From positions 1 through 64,000 of the forward strand of contig NW_013657626.1 in the NCBI RefSeq assembly GCF_000142905.1: a stretch of DNA of 64,000 nt, given 5' to 3'. Positions 28,091-37,528 of this stretch are shown piece after piece. The stretch is from Thecamonas trahens ATCC 50062. Lineage: Eukaryota > Protista > Apusomonadida. A model generated the notes under the pieces. That model was not told where the DNA came from and searched no databases. It saw nothing but the letters and a program-made list of their open reading frames with translations. Both the position numbers and the translations under genes were made by a program. Within the stretch, counting starts at the first letter, position 1, and each line of letters begins with the position of its first letter.

Positions 28091-31000
28091 ATGCGTCACC
28101 CTTTCCTTTTCCCTTCCACCACCTTTCTCGTGGCCGCCTTGCTCGTTGCCACAATGGCAATTCCGGCTGGCAGCGCTTGCAACGTTACTCTTGCTCACGG
28201 CAGCACTCTCGCCGACCTCAAATTAGCTATTGAAAGTGCGCCACTCTCGCCATCATGTGCAACGCCCTACGTTGTTTGTTTGGAAGCTATGATATCTGAC
28301 GACTGCTCAACCATGACCACGGGCGTTCTTGTTCCTCCTGCGCTCTCGATGACTCTGCGTGGAGAGTTCAGCAACAACACCGTCAACGCTGTCGGCATCA
28401 ACTGCACCGGCTACATCGCCCCGAATATCCTTTTTGACCTCGCCCCTCTTCCTGGCATCATCTTTACCATCGACTCGATGACGTTCGTTGGCTTTGAGAC
28501 CTCGCACTGGAAACCAGGTGGTATCGTCCGTGTCAGCGGCGCTTCTTCCACCGGTGCAATTGTCGTCCAAAACGTCACTGTCGACTACATCACCGCGCGG
28601 ATGGGTGCTATCGTCGGCGTCGACGGCAATGCTCATGACGGTGAGATCCACATCAGCAACTCAGACTTCTCCCACATCTCGGTCTCTTCTCAGGGCGGCC
28701 TGGTCTTTATCCCCGAGTCCGCCTTTGGCTGGCACGTCACCATGCGCAACATCCGAGTCTCCCACGCCTTTGCCCCTGCTGGTGCCGCCGTCGCGTTTGT
28801 CCGCCACTCACACCTTGTTGTCGACGGCGGCTCGACCTTTGTCGACACCCATGCCGAGAGCGGCTTTGCCGGAGCTGTTCAAGTCAGCAACGGATCGCTT
28901 GTCATGGCCCATGTCTCCTTCGATGACTGCTCCAGCACCTTTACCGGCTGTGTGGGTGTCACCGGTGCCGACGGCGTGGTCACCAACGTCACCGTCGTCC
29001 GTGCGCATTCTACCCAGGGCGATGGCGCAGCTTTCTCGGTCGTAAGCGACTGTCCGCTCAACGCCTCACTCACGCTTACCGACGTCTCGGTCACCTACTC
29101 GGAGGCGCGCCATGGCGGCGCAGTCCGGGTTTATGGCATGGCAGACTGCGCGCCGCCAAGACTAATCATCGCGCGCAGCACCTTTGCCCACAACGTTGGC
29201 CGCCTCCGTGCTGGCGCTATCAACGTTGGCAACGGCATGGTTGTCATCGACAACTCTGTCATCGTCAACAACACCTCGCCGCTTGGCAGTGCCATCTACA
29301 CCAACGCCATGCTTGCCGGGTCGGCGGTCACCAACTCGCTCATCACGGACAACCTCTCCACCGACAATGCCGCCACGGCCTCAGCTGTTTTTCTCGGCGC
29401 AGGCTCGCTCGTCGACTTTGCCGACTCGGCAATCTGCAGTAATCGCGCCCCGCCGTGCCGCAATGACATCTCCGCCGGGGCGCCGTACGTCCTCAATCTC
29501 AGCGGCGGGACGACCGAGGCTGAGCGTCCTTGCCTACACGGCCGTGTCGCATCCTGCCTCCCTGGCCCCTCCCTCAACCTCACATGCGTTGCATGCCACA
29601 AAGGCTGGGCCGGGCCCCGCTGCTCGCGACGCGCGCACTGCGTCAACCCCAGCGGCGATGTTGAGTGTGCAAGCAGTGATGTGCAGTGCTTCGAGTGTGA
29701 GGCCGGCTACGGTCGCACCTTTTTCAAGAGCATCTGCGAAGAGTGTGTCGCCGCAGAAAGCAAGTACTTTGTCTCACCCACTGTGCCGTGTGGCATCTGC
29801 GACGAAAACTGCCTCGACTGCACCGGCAGCCCTTCCAACTGCACCGCCTGTGTCTCGCATCTGATGCTCTCGGCCCCGGGCGTGAACGGGATCCGGGTCT
29901 GTCAACCGCCGCCACCACCGCCGCCGCCGCCATTGCCACCGCCGCCATCGCCACCGCCGCCTCCCTGCATCCCACCGGCAGCTGTGGATGACTGCGGCGT
30001 GTGCTCGGGGCCGGGCACAGGCCACGTCGCCAACTCGGACAAGGACGTGTGCGACGTGTGCTTTGGCGGCGGAAGCAGCATCGACGCCTGCGGCGTCTGC
30101 TTTGGCTCCGATGCTTGCGTTGATGCCTGCAGCGTTGCATGGGGTGACAACAGCACATGTGCCGGCTGCGACGGTGTTCCGCATTCAGGCCGTGTCCGTG
30201 ATGTGTGCGGCGAGTGCGGCGGGGACGGCTCGTCTTGTCTCGGCTGTGACGGCGTTCCTGTCCCGCTAGGTGGCGCTCACTACGATGCCTGTGGTGTGTG
30301 TGGCGGGAGTGCCTCGGGCGTGTGTGTCGCCTCGTGCGACAACTCGACGTTGACCCCGGTTGTCTTTGACTGCGCTGGCATCTGCAACGGCTCGGCCTTT
30401 GTGGACTCGTGTGGTGTGTGTGTGGGCGGAACCACGGGCCGAGCCCCACTAATGCACCGCGATGGCTGCGGGGACTGCTTCCAGCGGTGTGAAGGCTGTG
30501 ACACAGGCGTCTTTGCCGATTTGTGTGGCGTCTGTGGCGGCGACGACTCGACCTGTGCTGGCTGTGACGGCCTGGGGGGTACCATCGACGTCTGCGGCGT
30601 TTGTGCCGGAAACGGAAGTACGTGTGCCCTATCGTGTGATCCCTCGCTGGGCCACGCCGTCGCATACGACTGCAACGGCGTGTGTGGTGGCAGCGCGCTC
30701 AACTCCGAGTGCGGTATGTGCGTGGGCGGAACGACTGGCATTCCGCCTGCCGCCTTTATCGACTCGTGCGGCAAGTGCTTTCGCGGCAACGCTGATGTCG
30801 ACGCGTGTGGCGTGTGCTTTGGTAACAACGCCGATCGCGACGCCTGCGGCGTGTGCCACGGCGCCAATGCAGCGCTCGACTCATGCGGGATCTGCTTTGG
30901 TGGCGGTAGGTTCGAGGATGTGTGCGGGGTGTGCTACGGCAACAGCACTTTGTGCGCCGGCTGCGATGCCGTCGTCAAGTCGGGCCTCGTCTATGACGAC

Positions 31001-32254
31001 TGCGGCGTGTGCGGCGGCGATGGGGGCTCGTGCACGGTGGCGTCCGCTGCAAAAGCCTGGAGCTCGCAAGCCCTTGTCATTGCTACAGCTACGGTCGGGA
31101 GCTGTATTGCCGGTGTCGTCGCAGCCGTAATCGCCGCGCTGGCGGCCAAGCGCCGGCGAGTCCAGTCGGCGTACGTGGCGGCCAAGATGGCGACCGAAGG
31201 CGAGACTGCGCCTCACGGCAAAGTTGCAGTCCTCATCACTGACGTTCAGTCGTCGACCCACCTATGGGAGGCACACCCATCCGCCATGGTGGCTGCCATC
31301 GACGCCCACAATGACGCCTTTCGCCGTCTCCTCGCCCGCCACGGCGGATACGAGGTGCGGACCGAGGGCGACTCATTTGTGGTTGTCTTTGCTGATGCGG
31401 CTGCCGCTGTCGCTGCTGCCGTCGACATCCAACGCGAGCTCATGGAGCTTGACTGGCCTGAAGAGCTCCTTGTCGACAGCCTTGTCCCCACCGTCGATCA
31501 TGTGTGGGTCGGCTTGCGAGTCCGGATGGGCATCTCTCTGGCGACGGTCGCGCGGACTTGGGTGGCGCGGACGGAGCGGTTCACCTACGAGGGTCCCGGC
31601 ATGGTCGATGCGCAGATGATTGGCGATTGTGGGTGTGGCGGCCAGGTGGTTGTCGACGCCGACGTCGCCACTGCCGCAACCGCAGCCGGCTTTCATCTCG
31701 AACGCCTCGGCAACTACTCTGCGCCGTCGTCGAGCAAGGCGTACGAGCTCTGGCAAGTCATCATCAAGGACCTCACTCACTTGCGTGGCCTCGATGCCTC
31801 CAGCATCCGCGGCCTTGCCCGTCTCGCTTCGGCCAGCTCGTCGAGCTCGATCGCAGACCCGCCGTCATTGACTAGCACTCCTCCGCAACCACCGCTTTCT
31901 TGTCCGCTCCCTCCCGTCCTGGGCCCACAAGGCCTCTCCATCTCGCAGCCCGATAGCAGGGCCTTGCTCTCAAGAATACGGAACCATCGGAGCGCAAGCG
32001 CCGTCGCTCTCACTACCGCGTACGCAAGCCAGGACGAAGACTCGTCCATCAAGCCGGGCACCCATCGCAGCGGAACTCCGACGCGCAGCCGTCGCAACCT
32101 GCGTCGCAACTCGCGCAACTATAGCCCTGGCTCGAGCCCCACCACCGACCGCATCACGCGCGTTTCCAGCCTTCGTCGCTTCTCATCTCGGCGCATCTCG
32201 CCGGCTTCTACGCTCACCTCCAAGTCGAACAACTCTTCGCAAGACGGCGCGTAG
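28091..32254 (+). CDS. Receptor-type class III (adenylate/guanylate) cyclase-like protein: signal peptide, beta-helix-like region, EGF/furin-like Cys domains, D(A)CGVC repeats, TM, cyclase domain
   Basis: ITDVQSSTHLWE, GGYEVRTEGDSF, GLRVRMGI, GGQVVV. TM ALVIATATVGSCIAGVVAAVIAALAA. Many DxCGVC repeats. Confidence 0.88.
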   Translation: MRHPFLFPSTTFLVAALLVATMAIPAGSACNVTLAHGSTLADLKLAIESAPLSPSCATPYVVCLEAMISDDCSTMTTGVLVPPALSMTLRGEFSNNTVNAVGINCTGYIAPNILFDLAPLPGIIFTIDSMTFVGFETSHWKPGGIVRVSGASSTGAIVVQNVTVDYITARMGAIVGVDGNAHDGEIHISNSDFSHISVSSQGGLVFIPESAFGWHVTMRNIRVSHAFAPAGAAVAFVRHSHLVVDGGSTFVDTHAESGFAGAVQVSNGSLVMAHVSFDDCSSTFTGCVGVTGADGVVTNVTVVRAHSTQGDGAAFSVVSDCPLNASLTLTDVSVTYSEARHGGAVRVYGMADCAPPRLIIARSTFAHNVGRLRAGAINVGNGMVVIDNSVIVNNTSPLGSAIYTNAMLAGSAVTNSLITDNLSTDNAATASAVFLGAGSLVDFADSAICSNRAPPCRNDISAGAPYVLNLSGGTTEAERPCLHGRVASCLPGPSLNLTCVACHKGWAGPRCSRRAHCVNPSGDVECASSDVQCFECEAGYGRTFFKSICEECVAAESKYFVSPTVPCGICDENCLDCTGSPSNCTACVSHLMLSAPGVNGIRVCQPPPPPPPPPLPPPPSPPPPPCIPPAAVDDCGVCSGPGTGHVANSDKDVCDVCFGGGSSIDACGVCFGSDACVDACSVAWGDNSTCAGCDGVPHSGRVRDVCGECGGDGSSCLGCDGVPVPLGGAHYDACGVCGGSASGVCVASCDNSTLTPVVFDCAGICNGSAFVDSCGVCVGGTTGRAPLMHRDGCGDCFQRCEGCDTGVFADLCGVCGGDDSTCAGCDGLGGTIDVCGVCAGNGSTCALSCDPSLGHAVAYDCNGVCGGSALNSECGMCVGGTTGIPPAAFIDSCGKCFRGNADVDACGVCFGNNADRDACGVCHGANAALDSCGICFGGGRFEDVCGVCYGNSTLCAGCDAVVKSGLVYDDCGVCGGDGGSCTVASAAKAWSSQALVIATATVGSCIAGVVAAVIAALAAKRRRVQSAYVAAKMATEGETAPHGKVAVLITDVQSSTHLWEAHPSAMVAAIDAHNDAFRRLLARHGGYEVRTEGDSFVVVFADAAAAVAAAVDIQRELMELDWPEELLVDSLVPTVDHVWVGLRVRMGISLATVARTWVARTERFTYEGPGMVDAQMIGDCGCGGQVVVDADVATAATAAGFHLERLGNYSAPSSSKAYELWQVIIKDLTHLRGLDASSIRGLARLASASSSSSIADPPSLTSTPPQPPLSCPLPPVLGPQGLSISQPDSRALLSRIRNHRSASAVALTTAYASQDEDSSIKPGTHRSGTPTRSRRNLRRNSRNYSPGSSPTTDRITRVSSLRRFSSRRISPASTLTSKSNNSSQDGA

Positions 32255-32680
32255 ATCGCTTGCTCGAGGCCAAAGTCTATCCTTGGTGTGAAACAGCCCA
32301 CCATGTTTGTTTCATGGCGTTGACCACCTCGGAACAGACATACACAGAACAAAAAGACTACAGTCCCTCACAATACCACAATTATTCATCCGCAGAAAAA
32401 AAATGGGAATGTGTGACCGACCACAAACGTTGTCCCAAACCGTTTTGAGGGTCAGCTTGGGTCAGCCGCAGCAAGCAAAGCATGTTGGCAGGAGACGCCG
32501 TGCCGCGACACCCAAGCCGATCATATCTCACCCACCCACCCCACCCCCTACCACCGCCACCGCCACCGCTACACCCACCCACACACGCACACCCCGCCAC
32601 TCTTGCCACCCGCCCCACCACCCCCACCACCACCACCACCTCACTACCCGCTACCCACCCCCCCACCCTCCCACTATCCC

Positions 32681-32921
32681 ATGTCTTGCCCCTTGGGATT
32701 CACTTCGGGTAGCCGACCTGGAGGAGGTGCGGTAGAGGCCACGGGCGGTGGTCGCGGCGACGAACAAGGCCAAGCACAACAACACCATTCATCACGGACA
32801 GCCAACGAGACCACGAGTACCACCACCACCACCACCACCACCACCACCACCGCTGCCACCACCAACACCGATGCCACTACAGCCGCAGCATCCCCAAATC
32901 CATCACCACCATCATCATCAC

Positions 32922-32952
<31 letters not shown>

Positions 32953-35900
32953 GTCATGTTCACCTGCTTCGGTCAAGGGCACAGCAAAGTCTGCCATCAT
33001 CGACAAGATTGAAAGTGGCCCAGCAGGAGACGGATCGTATCGTCCCTTGCTCAAGACATCTGATGACGACGTCGATGACGACGTCGACGATGGCGATGGG
33101 GACGGTGTTGATGATCCTAGCTTGCTCATATCACTGTTCGTGGAGGATTTGTCGTCGGATGGCAACTCGCTACCGGCCGTTCTCAACTCGTCAGGCATCA
33201 ATGCCGAGTCGCTGGCGAGCTTCCTCAACTCGGTCTCGATGGACCATGCCTCCAGCACGCTCTCGACCATCGGGTCTACCGACAACGAAGGCCTTAGCGA
33301 CGACGTCAAGCTCGTGCTGCAGAATATTGGCGAAGTGACGACCGAGAGTGATACCGATGATGACGACGAGTTGCGGGCCGCCCGCGAACTGGAAGCACGT
33401 CAGTCGGGGTATGTGGTCGACTCGCCGACATCCGGCAACATTTGGTGGCCCAAGCTCCAGTCGCACAAGGTCTCGCTCTCGGAGGAAGACCTTGTGCTTA
33501 TGGCCGACGACCCGGTTGAGTATCTGAAGCGGCGGAGTGGGCGCGTAACCGAGTGCATCATCCACGCCCAGGCGCAGTGCCTGATTGACACGCCGGCGGC
33601 GCAAGTCTTCGGCACGCTCCTCGAGGCTATTCTCACCTTGACCGACTCGGAGTACGGGTTCATCGGCGAGATCGTCGACGTCAAGGGCGAGCCAGTCCTG
33701 CTCACCCACGCCATCACCAACATTGCGTGGAACGACCAGATGCGCGAGTACTACGACAACCAGATTGCCACCAAGGGTGGCTTTGTCTTTGACAATCTCA
33801 ACACGCTCTTTGGCCGAGTCATGATCACCGGCGAACCGTACATTGCCAACTCGCCCGACACCGACGAGTTCCGCTCGCCGGCCGGTCGGCCCGAGGGCCA
33901 TCCGCCGCTCAACGCCTTCCTCGGCGTCCCGCTCAAGCACGGCGGCGAACTTGTCGGCATGGTCGGCGTCGCCAACCGGCCGGTCGGCTACACCTCGCAC
34001 GTCGTCGAGTTTCTCGAACCTCTCCTCCTCACTGTCGGCAACATTGTCACCTCGTTCCGCAACCAGCGCATGCGCCAGTTTGCAGAGTCCGAAGTGGAGC
34101 GGATGAAGAACAGGTTGGAGCGGACCGTCCGCCGGCGAACCCGCGCCCTGCGCCACAAGAATACCCTCCTCCGCGCCGCTGTCATCAAGCGCATGGAGAT
34201 GGAGCGGATCGCCATCACGTTTGCAAAGACCCAGTCGGCCTTCCTCGCCAAGATGTCCCACGAGATCCGCACCCCGCTCAACGGTGTCATCGGCATGTCC
34301 GAGCTGCTCGAGCTCTCGCCGCTCAACGCCCAGCAGCGAGTCTATGTCTCTACCATCCGCTCCTCCGCCAACTCGCTCCAGGCTGTCATCTCGGACGTCC
34401 TCGACTTTTCTAAGATCGAGTCAGACAACCTCTCGCTCGAGGCCATCGCCTTCTCGCCCGTCGAGCTCATCGAGCAGTCGGCCCAGATTGTCGGGCCCAA
34501 GGCCGAGAGCAAGGGTATCGGCCTCGTCGCACACGTCTCGCCGGCCACCGCGCTCACTGTCGTCGGCGACCCGTCGCGTCTCAAGCAGGTCATCCTCAAC
34601 CTCGTCAACAACGCCGTCAAGTTTACCTCTGTCGGCCGCGTCGTCATCCACGTTGTGCCAACCGAGACTTCGTCAACGACCCAGAACCTTCGCATCACCA
34701 TCGAAGACACCGGCATCGGAATCTCCGATGAGCAGCTCGATCGCCTCTTCCAGCCCTACCGCCAGGCCGAGGCCTCCATCGCCCGCATGTACGGCGGAAC
34801 AGGCCTCGGTCTCGTCATCTCCAAGAAGATAGTCGAGCTCATGGGCGGCTCCATCACTGTCGAGTCCACCGTCGACGTCGGCACCTCGTTCATCGTCGAC
34901 ATCCCGTTTGCGCTCCGCGCCGACAGCCTCGCCCCCGGTCCGTCGGCGCTCGGCGGGCCCAACTCGACCTCGGTCGACAACTCGATCTCCACAGACTCGG
35001 CTGTCTCCTCACTCATGTCTTTGCTCACCATCCGGGATCGCATCGCCGACCTGCGATTTGTTGGCAAGCGCGCGCTGCTGGTCGAGGCCGACCCCGTCGC
35101 CTCGTCAGCCATGGAACTTTACTGCTCCACCATCGGCTTTGAGGTCGAAACCGCAGAATCCGGCATGCGCGCCATGCTCGCTGTCGCCAAGGACACAGCC
35201 ACCGCCAAGGCCATCCTCGACAAGCGGCCATACGCCTACATTTTTATCTCCACCGAGCTTGGTGACGTTGCCGCTGACGCCCTCGCCGAGCAGCTGCAGC
35301 ACATGCCCGAGCCGCCGACCGCCAAGATTGTCGTCATGTCGTCGTACGAGAAGCTCAACGCCCGCTGGGAGGTCGTCTTTGATGCCACCCTTGTGCGGCC
35401 CATGCTCCCGCACACCGTCCACGACGCCATCACCATGACCTTGACAACCGGCTCAGCCCACGGATGGCTTTCGGTCGGCTCTGATTCAAGCTTTGTCACC
35501 CGGCTCGCTCCCTTTGACTCGTCCACCACCAACGTTGCTGCCATCATCCGCCTCAAGATGCTCCTGCCCGACGCATTTAACGTCATCATCGTCGACGACA
35601 ACCAGACTAACCTTGACGTGGCCCAGCTCATGCTCTCCCGTTTGCGGCTCACCGCCGAGGCCGAAAGCGACCCAGAAGTGGCGCTTGACAAGATCGTCGC
35701 CAACTCGTACGATCTCGTACTCCTCGACTGCTACATGCCGTCGCTCTCGGGCTACGAATTGACCAAGCGGCTGCGCGAGGCCGAAGCTGAGCTGCACCCC
35801 TCGCGCCACACCCGCGTCATCGCCATGTCTGCCGCAGTCATGTCGCAAGAAGTCGAAAAGTGCATGGACGCCGGCATGGACGGCTTCATCGCAAAGCCGC

Positions 35901-36871
35901 TCTTTCTCGACGCTCTCTTCTCCATGCTCTGCAAGGAGCTCGAGGGCTACCACGCCGCCATCGAGTCTGCGCTCGTCAACGGTGACTACGCCCCCGAGTA
36001 CTCGGCCTCAATCTCGCAGTCCAACTCGGTCTCGACCGCAATGACCCTTCTCCAAAAGCCCAGCGACAAGGCCTTGCGTGAGCCTGCTGTCGCCTCTGGC
36101 TCATCGTCAGGCTCAGACTCGGACTCGGACTCGGACTCGGACATGGACTCGGACTCGGGGCGGCTGGCGCGCCTTTCGTACGACTCCAAGCAGAACTCGA
36201 TGTGCTCGGCCTCGGTCCCGTCGCTCTGCTCAGCGTCGATCGAAAAAGTTGATGTCACCCTTGCTGCCGCCACCGTCATCCTTGCCGAGGCGCCCAAGCA
36301 CATCTACGACGCGCCGCTGTCCGCCGACTCGAGTACGTCATCCGCCTCATTGTCCAGTGATGACCGGGACCGCAAGTCGAAGCGGAAGAAGAAGCGCAAG
36401 AGAAAGAAGAGCAAGAGGAAGCTCAAGTCTAAGATCCCGAGCGCCTCCTCGCCGGTCCCGGGCATGGATGTCGTGCCCCCACTCGTTTCCCCAAAGACGA
36501 CCACGGTGGATGCCACGTCAAAGTCCACGCTTTTGCTCGGCTCTGCCAAGCCGGCCAGTCGCAATCCGTCGTCGAGTTCGGAAACGGTGACAACCTCATC
36601 CGAAGCCGATCTGGCCTCGATCGACTCAGGCTCAACCGTGGAGACAATGTCGCTGCACATGGAACAGGCACCGGTCCGACGGCGGCTGCCCAGGAAGCTG
36701 CCACCGGTTCCCGAGTCGTCCATGTCACGCAGCGCCATGTCGGAGCCGCCCGTGCCACAGAAGAAGGCCCGGCCCAAGGCCCGCCGCAACGAGCGCGATC
36801 CGACCTGGATCTACGTCGCCCTCATTCTCGCTGTCACCGTTATCGTCAACAAGCTCATCGACCGGATGTAG
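32681..36871 (+). CDS. Hybrid sensor histidine kinase (GAF-HisKA-HATPase-pseudoREC-REC) with C-terminal TM
   Basis: H-box MSHEIRTPLNG, N-box NLVNNAVKFT, DTGIG, GGTGLGL. REC VDDN..DLVLLDCYMP..FIAKP. GAF PEGHPPLNAFLGVPL. The ATG at 32681 is the probable start. Confidence 0.93.
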
Positions 36872-36910
36872 TTTACCAACCAGCAGCGGTAGCCTAGGCC
36901 AGCCATACGC

Positions 36911-37528
36911 TCACTTTGTCGTGTTGAGCTCGGCAATGACGTGCTTCAGCACGTCCGACGTAGGGACAGACGCATCAAATGAGCCGACAAGCTTGCCGCG
37001 GCGGGAGAAGAGGACGCGATGGAAGACGCCGGCCGGGATCAGCTCGGGCTTCTCCTTCAGCTCGCGTGCAACGAACCGATAGATAGAGCTCGGCTTCTCG
37101 CCAATATCAGCAACTTCTGTCAACGGCAGCGTCACGCCCATGTTGTGGACCTCTTCCCTCAGCGCCTCGCGATCAAGCTCCTCACTTCCATCGACTCCCT
37201 CGACAGGCGAGGCCAGCACAAAGAGACCCTTTGACCTCAGCTCTTGCCACATTGCCTCCAGTTCCGGAATGTGACTCGCCGCCGCTTTTTCCACAACGCC
37301 ATCATTTGCCCGAACTTTTGAATGAAGCGCAAAGGTTGTCGTCAGCAGAACCTTGCCCGTCAAGTAGTACATGGGCAGGTGCATACCATCGAGGGTGTCC
37401 ACAGCCACGCCCTCGGCGTAGAGCGACTTGCCCCAACCAAGCGGAGGCTCATGCGAGTAGCTACTGGCCCTCCTCCGCACCGCTCCTTCAACCATACGCC
37501 TCACTCCGCCAATTCCCGCCCTCAGCAT
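36911..37528 (-). CDS. Glutathione-peroxidase/thioredoxin-fold protein lacking Cys, probably mitochondrial
   Basis: Spacing matches GPx: DTLDG..LTGKVLL, ELRSKGLFVLASP, IYRFV, FHRVLFSRRGKLVGSF. Arg-rich presequence-like N-terminus. Confidence 0.65.
   Translation of the reverse strand: MLRAGIGGVRRMVEGAVRRRASSYSHEPPLGWGKSLYAEGVAVDTLDGMHLPMYYLTGKVLLTTTFALHSKVRANDGVVEKAAASHIPELEAMWQELRSKGLFVLASPVEGVDGSEELDREALREEVHNMGVTLPLTEVADIGEKPSSIYRFVARELKEKPELIPAGVFHRVLFSRRGKLVGSFDASVPTSDVLKHVIAELNTTK

Follow-up and report, generated by a model that had tools for sequence, protein, structure and literature searches.

A hybrid histidine kinase of Thecamonas trahens with a GAF domain from a conserved prokaryotic sensor-kinase subfamily

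The kinase locus and its domains

The stretch of DNA analyzed here (the window) comprises the first 64,000 nucleotides of contig NW_013657626.1 of the apusomonad Thecamonas trahens ATCC 50062 (assembly GCF_000142905.1). The forward strand of the window carries an open frame at 32603-36871, in which 32681 is the position of the first ATG, and the predicted product of 1396 amino acids begins with MSCPLGF, as had been stated in an earlier reading of the same DNA made from the letters alone (hereafter the sequence-only reading). That reading described the product as a bacterial-type hybrid histidine kinase whose GAF domain resembles the heme-binding GAF domains of the mycobacterial kinases DosS and DosT. 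We consider it likely that the gene encodes an intact hybrid histidine kinase that is descended from bacterial ones, faces the cytosol, and is probably tail-anchored, with a single GAF domain as its sensor. The integrity of the gene, its domains and catalytic residues, the subfamily to which the GAF domain belongs, the alignment of a histidine in this domain, and a paralogue were all obtained from the sequence and by computation. The features of the locus are collected in Table 1.

Table 1. Features of the kinase locus. Positions are those of the window.
Feature	Position	Strand	Remarks
Upstream open reading frame, receptor-type cyclase	28091..32254	+	Guanylate_cyc at residues 1040-1212, E 1.8e-16
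Gap between the cyclase frame and the kinase ATG	32255..32680	+	426 bases, three in-frame stops
Hybrid histidine kinase, coding sequence	32681..36871	+	1396 residues plus stop; no internal stop, no sign of an intron
Cys3-Pro4	32687..32692	+	Sole CP dipeptide of the protein; hydrophobic Leu5 follows
GAF sensor domain (residues 290-470)	33548..34090	+	Pfam GAF_2 core at 33599-34045; member of a bacterial/archaeal subfamily
His407 in the GHPP loop	33899..33901	+	Aligns with the proximal heme ligands His149 (DosS) and His147 (DosT)
Gly429	33965..33967	+	Aligned with distal Tyr171 of DosS when the profile is compared to DevS; Gly in 105/107
HisKA dimerization and phospho-acceptor domain	34232..34423	+	E 7.8e-21; SHEIRTP; phospho-His527 at 34259-34261
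HATPase_c catalytic domain	34565..34912	+	E 2.6e-29; N, G1, and G2 boxes NNAVKF, DTGIG, and GTGLGL
Degenerate receiver-like domain (residues ~791-915)	35051..35425	+	Ser857 (35249-35251) at the phospho-Asp position
Intact receiver	35582..35926	+	Response_reg, E 4.7e-26; DD972, phospho-Asp1016 (35726-35728), Lys1072
C-terminal hydrophobic stretch	36806..36868	+	About 18-20 residues after a basic run; putative tail anchor; also in the paralogue

Pfam domains are reported where they exceeded the cut-off, unless an E value is given as lying below it. In the 1396-residue protein these were GAF_2 (residues 307-455), HisKA (518-581), HATPase_c (629-744), and Response_reg (968-1082). The H, N, and G boxes and the phospho-Asp of the receiver, which the sequence-only reading had called intact, were all found: His527, the N, G1, and G2 boxes, DD972, Asp1016, and Lys1072 are present. 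The degenerate receiver-like domain that precedes the intact receiver matched Response_reg with an E value of 0.0027 and Receiver_CRE1 with one of 0.021, both below the cut-off. A receiver-like domain without the phospho-Asp followed by a true receiver is also the arrangement in the plant cytokinin receptor AHK4/CRE1; however, the Thecamonas kinase has no CHASE domain, and the sensors of the two proteins are unrelated.

Low-complexity sequence rich in Ser, Thr, and Asp or in Ser and Lys makes up the first ~250 residues and residues 1095-1372, the latter with a polybasic run. A hydrophobic segment extends from Trp1376 to near the end of the protein and is conserved in the paralogue, whereas the other end of the protein depends on the gene model. 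The hydrophobic C-terminus after a basic stretch looks like a tail anchor and would insert into a membrane. The run of Lys and Arg itself (similar to KKRKKKRK, at about 36330-36400 of the window) lies ahead of the hydrophobic C-terminus, within disordered sequence, and the paralogue has one likewise. This run could be a nuclear-localization signal or a membrane-binding polybasic patch, and its presence fits poorly with a tail anchor.

In a word-based protein search, the best 120 matches were exclusively bacterial or metagenomic multidomain kinases. For the region comprising the GAF domain and the kinase core, several bacterial or metagenomic matches were 40-45% identical over 93-99% of its length. 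A search of the whole genome for phosphorelay partners, as the sequence-only reading had proposed, returned three HPt matches at two loci, 22 receiver matches, and 12 HisKA matches. The Pfam domains, the bacterial protein matches, and the HPt and receiver genes in the genome bear out the description, in that a protist has a GAF hybrid kinase of bacterial type. The number of HisKA matches is similar to the 11 kinases published for Thecamonas trahens by Kabbara et al. in 2019 (PMC6324907). In that study, apusozoan kinases were said to lack similarity to bacterial ones (PMC6324907); judging by the protein search, this statement does not hold for the kinase gene described here, and the published claim that apusozoan kinases have no bacterial relatives is corrected accordingly. 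Contamination with bacterial DNA was considered and rejected on account of the long low-complexity regions, the paralogue on another 192-kb contig, and the eukaryote-type neighbors.

The genome encodes one further GAF domain with the same Gly-His-Pro-Pro (GHPP) loop, on the minus strand of the 192-kb contig C65 (L007 377-6120). This paralogue consists of a disordered N-terminus, GAF, HisKA, and HATPase_c domains, a Ser-bearing receiver-like domain, a receiver, a polybasic run, and a hydrophobic C-terminus. Sequence identity between the two proteins is 50% for the part that begins with the second half of the GAF domain and closes with the kinase core, and 43% for the two receivers; the paralogue keeps the histidine of the GAF loop (GHPAIATYMGVP). 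The frame of the paralogue is broken once inside the GAF domain, near L007 4333-4339, which could reflect an assembly error (an indel) or a real defect in a decaying copy. In the phylogeny, for which the sequence-only reading had called, the two Thecamonas copies form a clade with 100/100 support in which the paralogue has a long branch; however, their placement among the bacterial sequences was not resolved. The safest statement is that the gene codes for an intact hybrid kinase of bacterial descent that is controlled by its GAF domain, was duplicated in the Thecamonas lineage, and probably feeds a phosphorelay, to which the HPt and receiver proteins of the genome would belong.

A segment preceding the GAF domain (33437-33547 of the window), with the pattern WWP-x-L ... 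ED ... DP-x-x-YL-x-R, is common to both paralogues; the other N-terminal parts of the two proteins are low-complexity sequences unrelated to each other. The GHPP loop was absent from the other GAF domains of the genome, which are located on contigs C46, C30, C26, and C6. One of these belongs to a third GAF-HisKA kinase (G000:C6:585670-586377), whose GAF domain is of a different kind (MHPCFEAF...YIGTP).

The GAF subfamily and its likeness to DosS and DosT

The GAF stretch quoted in the sequence-only reading is present as given, and the codon of His407 falls inside PAGRPEGHPPLNAFLGVPL; in the protein, His407 sits in the loop GHPPLNAFLGVP. Over all 181 residues, the GAF domain alone is 45-52% identical to GAF domains of prokaryotic kinases, with E values down to 1e-57. 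A scan of species-representative genomes recovered 191 relatives. Among the best 80 of these 191, 34 are from Cyanobacteriota and 26 from Pseudomonadota; further taxa in this set are Nitrospirota, Verrucomicrobiota, Thermodesulfobacteriota, Bacteroidota, Myxococcota, Chloroflexota, Planctomycetota, and the archaeon Candidatus Methanoperedens. Pfam domains were determined for nine prokaryotic members, all of which are kinases, usually with additional PAS or GAF domains. A minimal architecture is that of a soluble GAF-HisKA-HATPase_c kinase of 451 residues from Alteromonas flava P0211 (L078:2917-4269). In Candidatus Methanoperedens sp. BLZ2 (L019), the subfamily GAF is part of a MASE3-PAS-GAF-HisKA_2 kinase; the module has therefore been combined with different classes of kinase.

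Conservation was counted in an alignment of 107 GAF domains of the subfamily. The conserved blocks are SEYGFIGE, THAITNIAWN, NL-TLFG, GGLPxGHPPLNAFLG-P, and GM-G-ANRPxGY. His407 is kept in 105 of the 107 sequences, and the polar positions Glu330, Asn347, Trp350, Asn372, Asn390, Asn432, Arg433, and Tyr437 are invariant. Position 395 is Asp in 91 sequences, as in the kinase, and His in 15, and position 343 is not invariant (His in 73, Tyr in 11, Arg in 6). The loop before His407 contains a two-residue insertion (positions 399-400) that is absent in 106 of the 107.

The prokaryotic members from Alteromonas flava, Marinobacter mobilis, Crocosphaera, and Candidatus Methanoperedens share all the signature blocks with the Thecamonas GAF domain, and in some members the GAF domain directly precedes HisKA, as it does in Thecamonas. 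In contrast to the prokaryotic proteins, the protist kinases have long disordered regions rich in Ser, Thr, and Asp, a polybasic run, and a putative C-terminal membrane anchor; they have the two-residue insertion before the histidine and do not have the PAS domains that are common in prokaryotes. An NCBIfam scan of the GAF domain alone assigned no family, and a search of the ESM Atlas with a bacterial homologue returned only generic "GAF domain-containing" clusters. As judged from these comparisons, the domain is a member of a large, strongly conserved, and uncharacterized subfamily of bacterial and archaeal sensor-kinase GAF domains, which is separate from the GAF-A of DosS.

When the GAF sequence was used as a single query against the PDB, the GAF-A domains of DosT and DevS were the first matches, but weak ones (E values of 0.05-0.09 over 48 residues). 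A profile built from 55 sequences, with a mean column identity of 59%, placed DosT (2.8e-7) and DevS/DosS (3e-6) on top; the non-heme GAF domain of PtsP (EI-Ntr; PDB 3TRC, 3CI6) followed in third place with an E value of 6e-5. In the profile alignment, His407 falls on His147 of DosT and His149 of DosS, the proximal heme ligands of these proteins (PMC4082495), as the sequence-only reading had anticipated, and the alignment is free of gaps from the His loop through strand beta5. The stretch that matches between the subfamily and DosS/DosT (PDB 2W3D-H, 2VZW) reads G-x-P-x-x-H-P-P-[LM]-x-x-F-L-G-V-P, so that the proximal His of DosS/DosT lies in an HPP..FLGVP loop which the kinase GAF has in common with them. 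By sequence comparison, the likeness to DosS/DosT exceeds what chance would produce.

However, the alignment between the profile and DosS/DosT spans profile positions 85-168 only, and the likeness is limited to the His loop, strands beta4-beta5, and the last helix. A profile restricted to the N-terminal half of the GAF domain found no DosS/DosT match in the PDB at E values up to 10. Its best match, to a ferredoxin-NADP reductase (E 0.19), was rejected as being at chance level. The distal Tyr171 allows DosS to tell O2 from CO and NO (PMC4082495), and residues Glu87, Phe98, and Ile121 have been named as part of the DosS pocket (PMC12154584, PMC9062744). Where DosS and DosT have the distal tyrosine (Tyr171 and Tyr169, respectively), the subfamily has an invariant Gly, and for the distal beta1/beta2 side of DosS/DosT (Glu87-His89, Phe98) the N-terminal half of the kinase GAF has no detectable counterpart. 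An alignment to DosS made by hand, which we take as a lead only, would presumably place Glu87, Phe98, and Ile121 at Gly329, Ile345, and Phe377 and would give a pocket floor of Gly and hydrophobic residues. The architectures also differ: DosS and DosT have a GAF-A/GAF-B tandem, HisKA_3, and a separate NarL-type regulator, whereas the Thecamonas kinase has a single GAF domain, HisKA (PF00512), and fused receivers.

The AlphaFold2 model of the domain has a canonical GAF fold (predicted local distance difference test score, pLDDT, 89.2; predicted template modeling score, pTM, 0.85). In a Foldseek search with this model, PDE6 and PtsP came first, and DosS/DosT occupied ranks 20-43. The predicted fold is thus compatible with that of DosS but no closer to it than to the folds of non-heme GAF domains, and the structural comparison proposed in the sequence-only reading did not single out DosS. 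What stands of the proposed DosS/DosT-like GAF is that these proteins are its nearest solved relatives by sequence and that its histidine is at the position of the proximal ligand; the correspondence fails at the distal tyrosine. As a statement about the whole domain, it applies to the C-terminal half, but the N-terminal half has no match, the fold shows no preference, and the surrounding architecture is different.

Candidate ligands of the sensor domain

We infer the signaling route, the tail anchor, and any ligand from the features described above. The single GAF domain would act as the sensor and hold a ligand or cofactor in a pocket closed by the invariant Gly-His-Pro-Pro loop. Binding would alter the long helix connecting the GAF domain with HisKA, and this change would set the autophosphorylation at His527. 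The phosphate would then pass from His527 to Asp1016 of the kinase's own receiver and from there to the HPt proteins and response regulators of the genome. The likeliest single candidate for the ligand, which we name tentatively, is b-type heme bound through His407, in a pocket whose floor would be formed by Gly and hydrophobic residues and not by the Tyr-Glu-His network of DosS. Heme is the best single guess because the near-invariant histidine lies in a gap-free loop that is common only to the two known heme GAF domains. The subfamily has an invariant Gly at the position of the distal tyrosine; therefore, if heme is bound, the discrimination between ligands would work differently from that in DosS/DosT.

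Several points weigh against this overall picture. The His loop is the part of the GAF model that was predicted with lower confidence (pLDDT about 79). No member of the subfamily has a demonstrated ligand, and a full-text search of the literature for the motif strings of the subfamily found no paper; a search for work on heme, GAF domains, and kinases together returned only studies of DosS/DosT, MsmS, and phytochromes. In addition, the start codon and the gene model are uncertain, and the kinase may form one fused gene with the cyclase frame upstream.

A non-heme ligand or a metal is at least as likely overall, because the distal tyrosine is missing, the N-terminal half is unrelated to that of DosS/DosT, and many polar residues are invariant. 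The ligand could be a small polar metabolite, an anion, or a metal held by His407 together with Glu330, Asp395, and His343, with the His loop acting as a lid, as it does in other GAF domains; we regard this as a serious possibility that falls short of being probable. GAF domains with a known ligand mostly bind small molecules. The invariant polar residues listed above, along with Asp395, would suit such a ligand, the best structural matches are to non-heme GAF domains (PtsP, PDE5/6, HD-GYP), and the GAF domain of PtsP comes directly after DosS/DosT in the sequence comparison. However, residues predicted to form the floor of the pocket on the sheet are hydrophobic or Gly, as would suit a large flat cofactor; Met427 and Gly429 were mapped by the profile alignment, whereas the mapping of Phe327, Gly329, and Ile345 presumably holds only as far as the hand alignment to DosS and is a lead only. 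Furthermore, the domain contains none of the known ligand motifs, such as NKFDE, and His343 is not invariant.

We are more doubtful of the proposal made in the sequence-only reading, a DosS/DosT-like heme sensor of O2, NO, or CO (possibly for hypoxia) with the iron on His407 and the N-terminal Cys-Pro as an additional heme regulatory motif. The rank of DosT and DosS GAF-A as the best PDB matches of the profile, the alignment of a near-invariant histidine with the proximal ligand, the gap-free alignment from the His loop through beta5, and a compatible fold are what such a sensor should show. Against it stand the Gly in place of the tyrosine needed for ligand discrimination (PMC4082495), the confinement of the sequence likeness to the C-terminal half, and the combination of a single GAF domain with HisKA instead of HisKA_3 in a hybrid kinase with receivers. 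The Cys-Pro dipeptide does not add to the case. We give it no weight because a single CP in 1396 residues compares with 0.54 expected from composition, because it has no counterpart in the first part of the paralogue's frame, and because the start codon is uncertain; the dipeptide is not more frequent than chance allows. The open frame of the paralogue has no CP close to its start, the only one found being in ECPGG further in, and none of the bacterial relatives has an N-terminus that corresponds. Should the published fusion with the cyclase be correct, the CP would no longer be N-terminal at all.

That the GAF domain binds no ligand and serves only for dimerization or as a regulatory module, with a structural role for the conserved histidine, would agree with the many GAF domains without a known ligand and with a purely structural conservation of Gly, Pro, and Asn, but is quite improbable, because the domain is very highly conserved in many phyla from two domains of life and because the near-invariant loop His, Glu, and Arg are hard to explain by structure alone.

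It is conceivable, although we would not expect it, that the GHPP-loop subfamily represents a second and far more widespread class of heme-b sensor GAF domains, with a distal pocket lined by Gly, and that the two Thecamonas kinases, bacterial-derived and duplicated, are the first known case of heme-based gas or redox sensing by histidine kinases of a eukaryote. To our knowledge, heme-binding GAF domains have been found in only a few proteins (DosS/DosT, MsmS), and we know of no heme-based histidine kinase from a eukaryote. The comparison sharpens the original hypothesis, in that the question of heme now extends to an entire subfamily of prokaryotic GAF domains in which a DosS-like His loop is nearly invariant. 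The soluble 451-residue kinase of Alteromonas flava offers a convenient test protein for the cofactor of the subfamily. Binding of heme would at once reveal the cofactor of many kinases in bacteria and archaea and of the two protist kinases; if heme is not bound, the HPP..FLGVP loop alone would not predict heme.

Gene model and neighboring genes

The gene is probably TtrahHK8 of Thecamonas trahens, which a catalogue of 2019 lists as fused to the cyclase upstream (PMC6324907); the match was made by architecture and not by sequence comparison. No ligand or function is given for TtrahHK8 in that catalogue (PMC6324907). Its gene model probably fuses the cyclase with the kinase, whereas the window contains two open reading frames. 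Because no cyclase precedes the paralogue, we favor two separate genes and accordingly question the published fusion.

According to the fused model, which we think doubtful, the kinase would be the C-terminal half of a protein of ~2700-2800 residues with the order ectodomain, transmembrane segment, cyclase, GAF, kinase, and receiver, and the three in-frame stops between 32252 and 32416 would be spliced out with an intron. The question of the ligand is independent of this model. The cyclase and kinase frames lie only 426 bases apart on a common strand and in a common frame, and among the GAF/HisKA loci of the genome this is the only GAF-HisKA locus seen with a cyclase frame directly upstream; a stand-alone product was also absent from the results of a length-limited protein search. 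These observations would agree with a fusion. However, a divergent gene for a leucine-rich repeat protein takes the place of the cyclase upstream of the paralogue on C65, and a long Ser-rich tail closes the cyclase frame. In addition, the G+C content of the first 176 bases of the gap is 45%, compared to 61-63% in coding sequence, as expected of an intergenic spacer.

Downstream, only 39 bases (36872-36910) separate the stop codon of the kinase from the end of a convergent gene (36911-37528). With this spacing, the 3' ends of the kinase transcript and of the convergent transcript must overlap or be very short.

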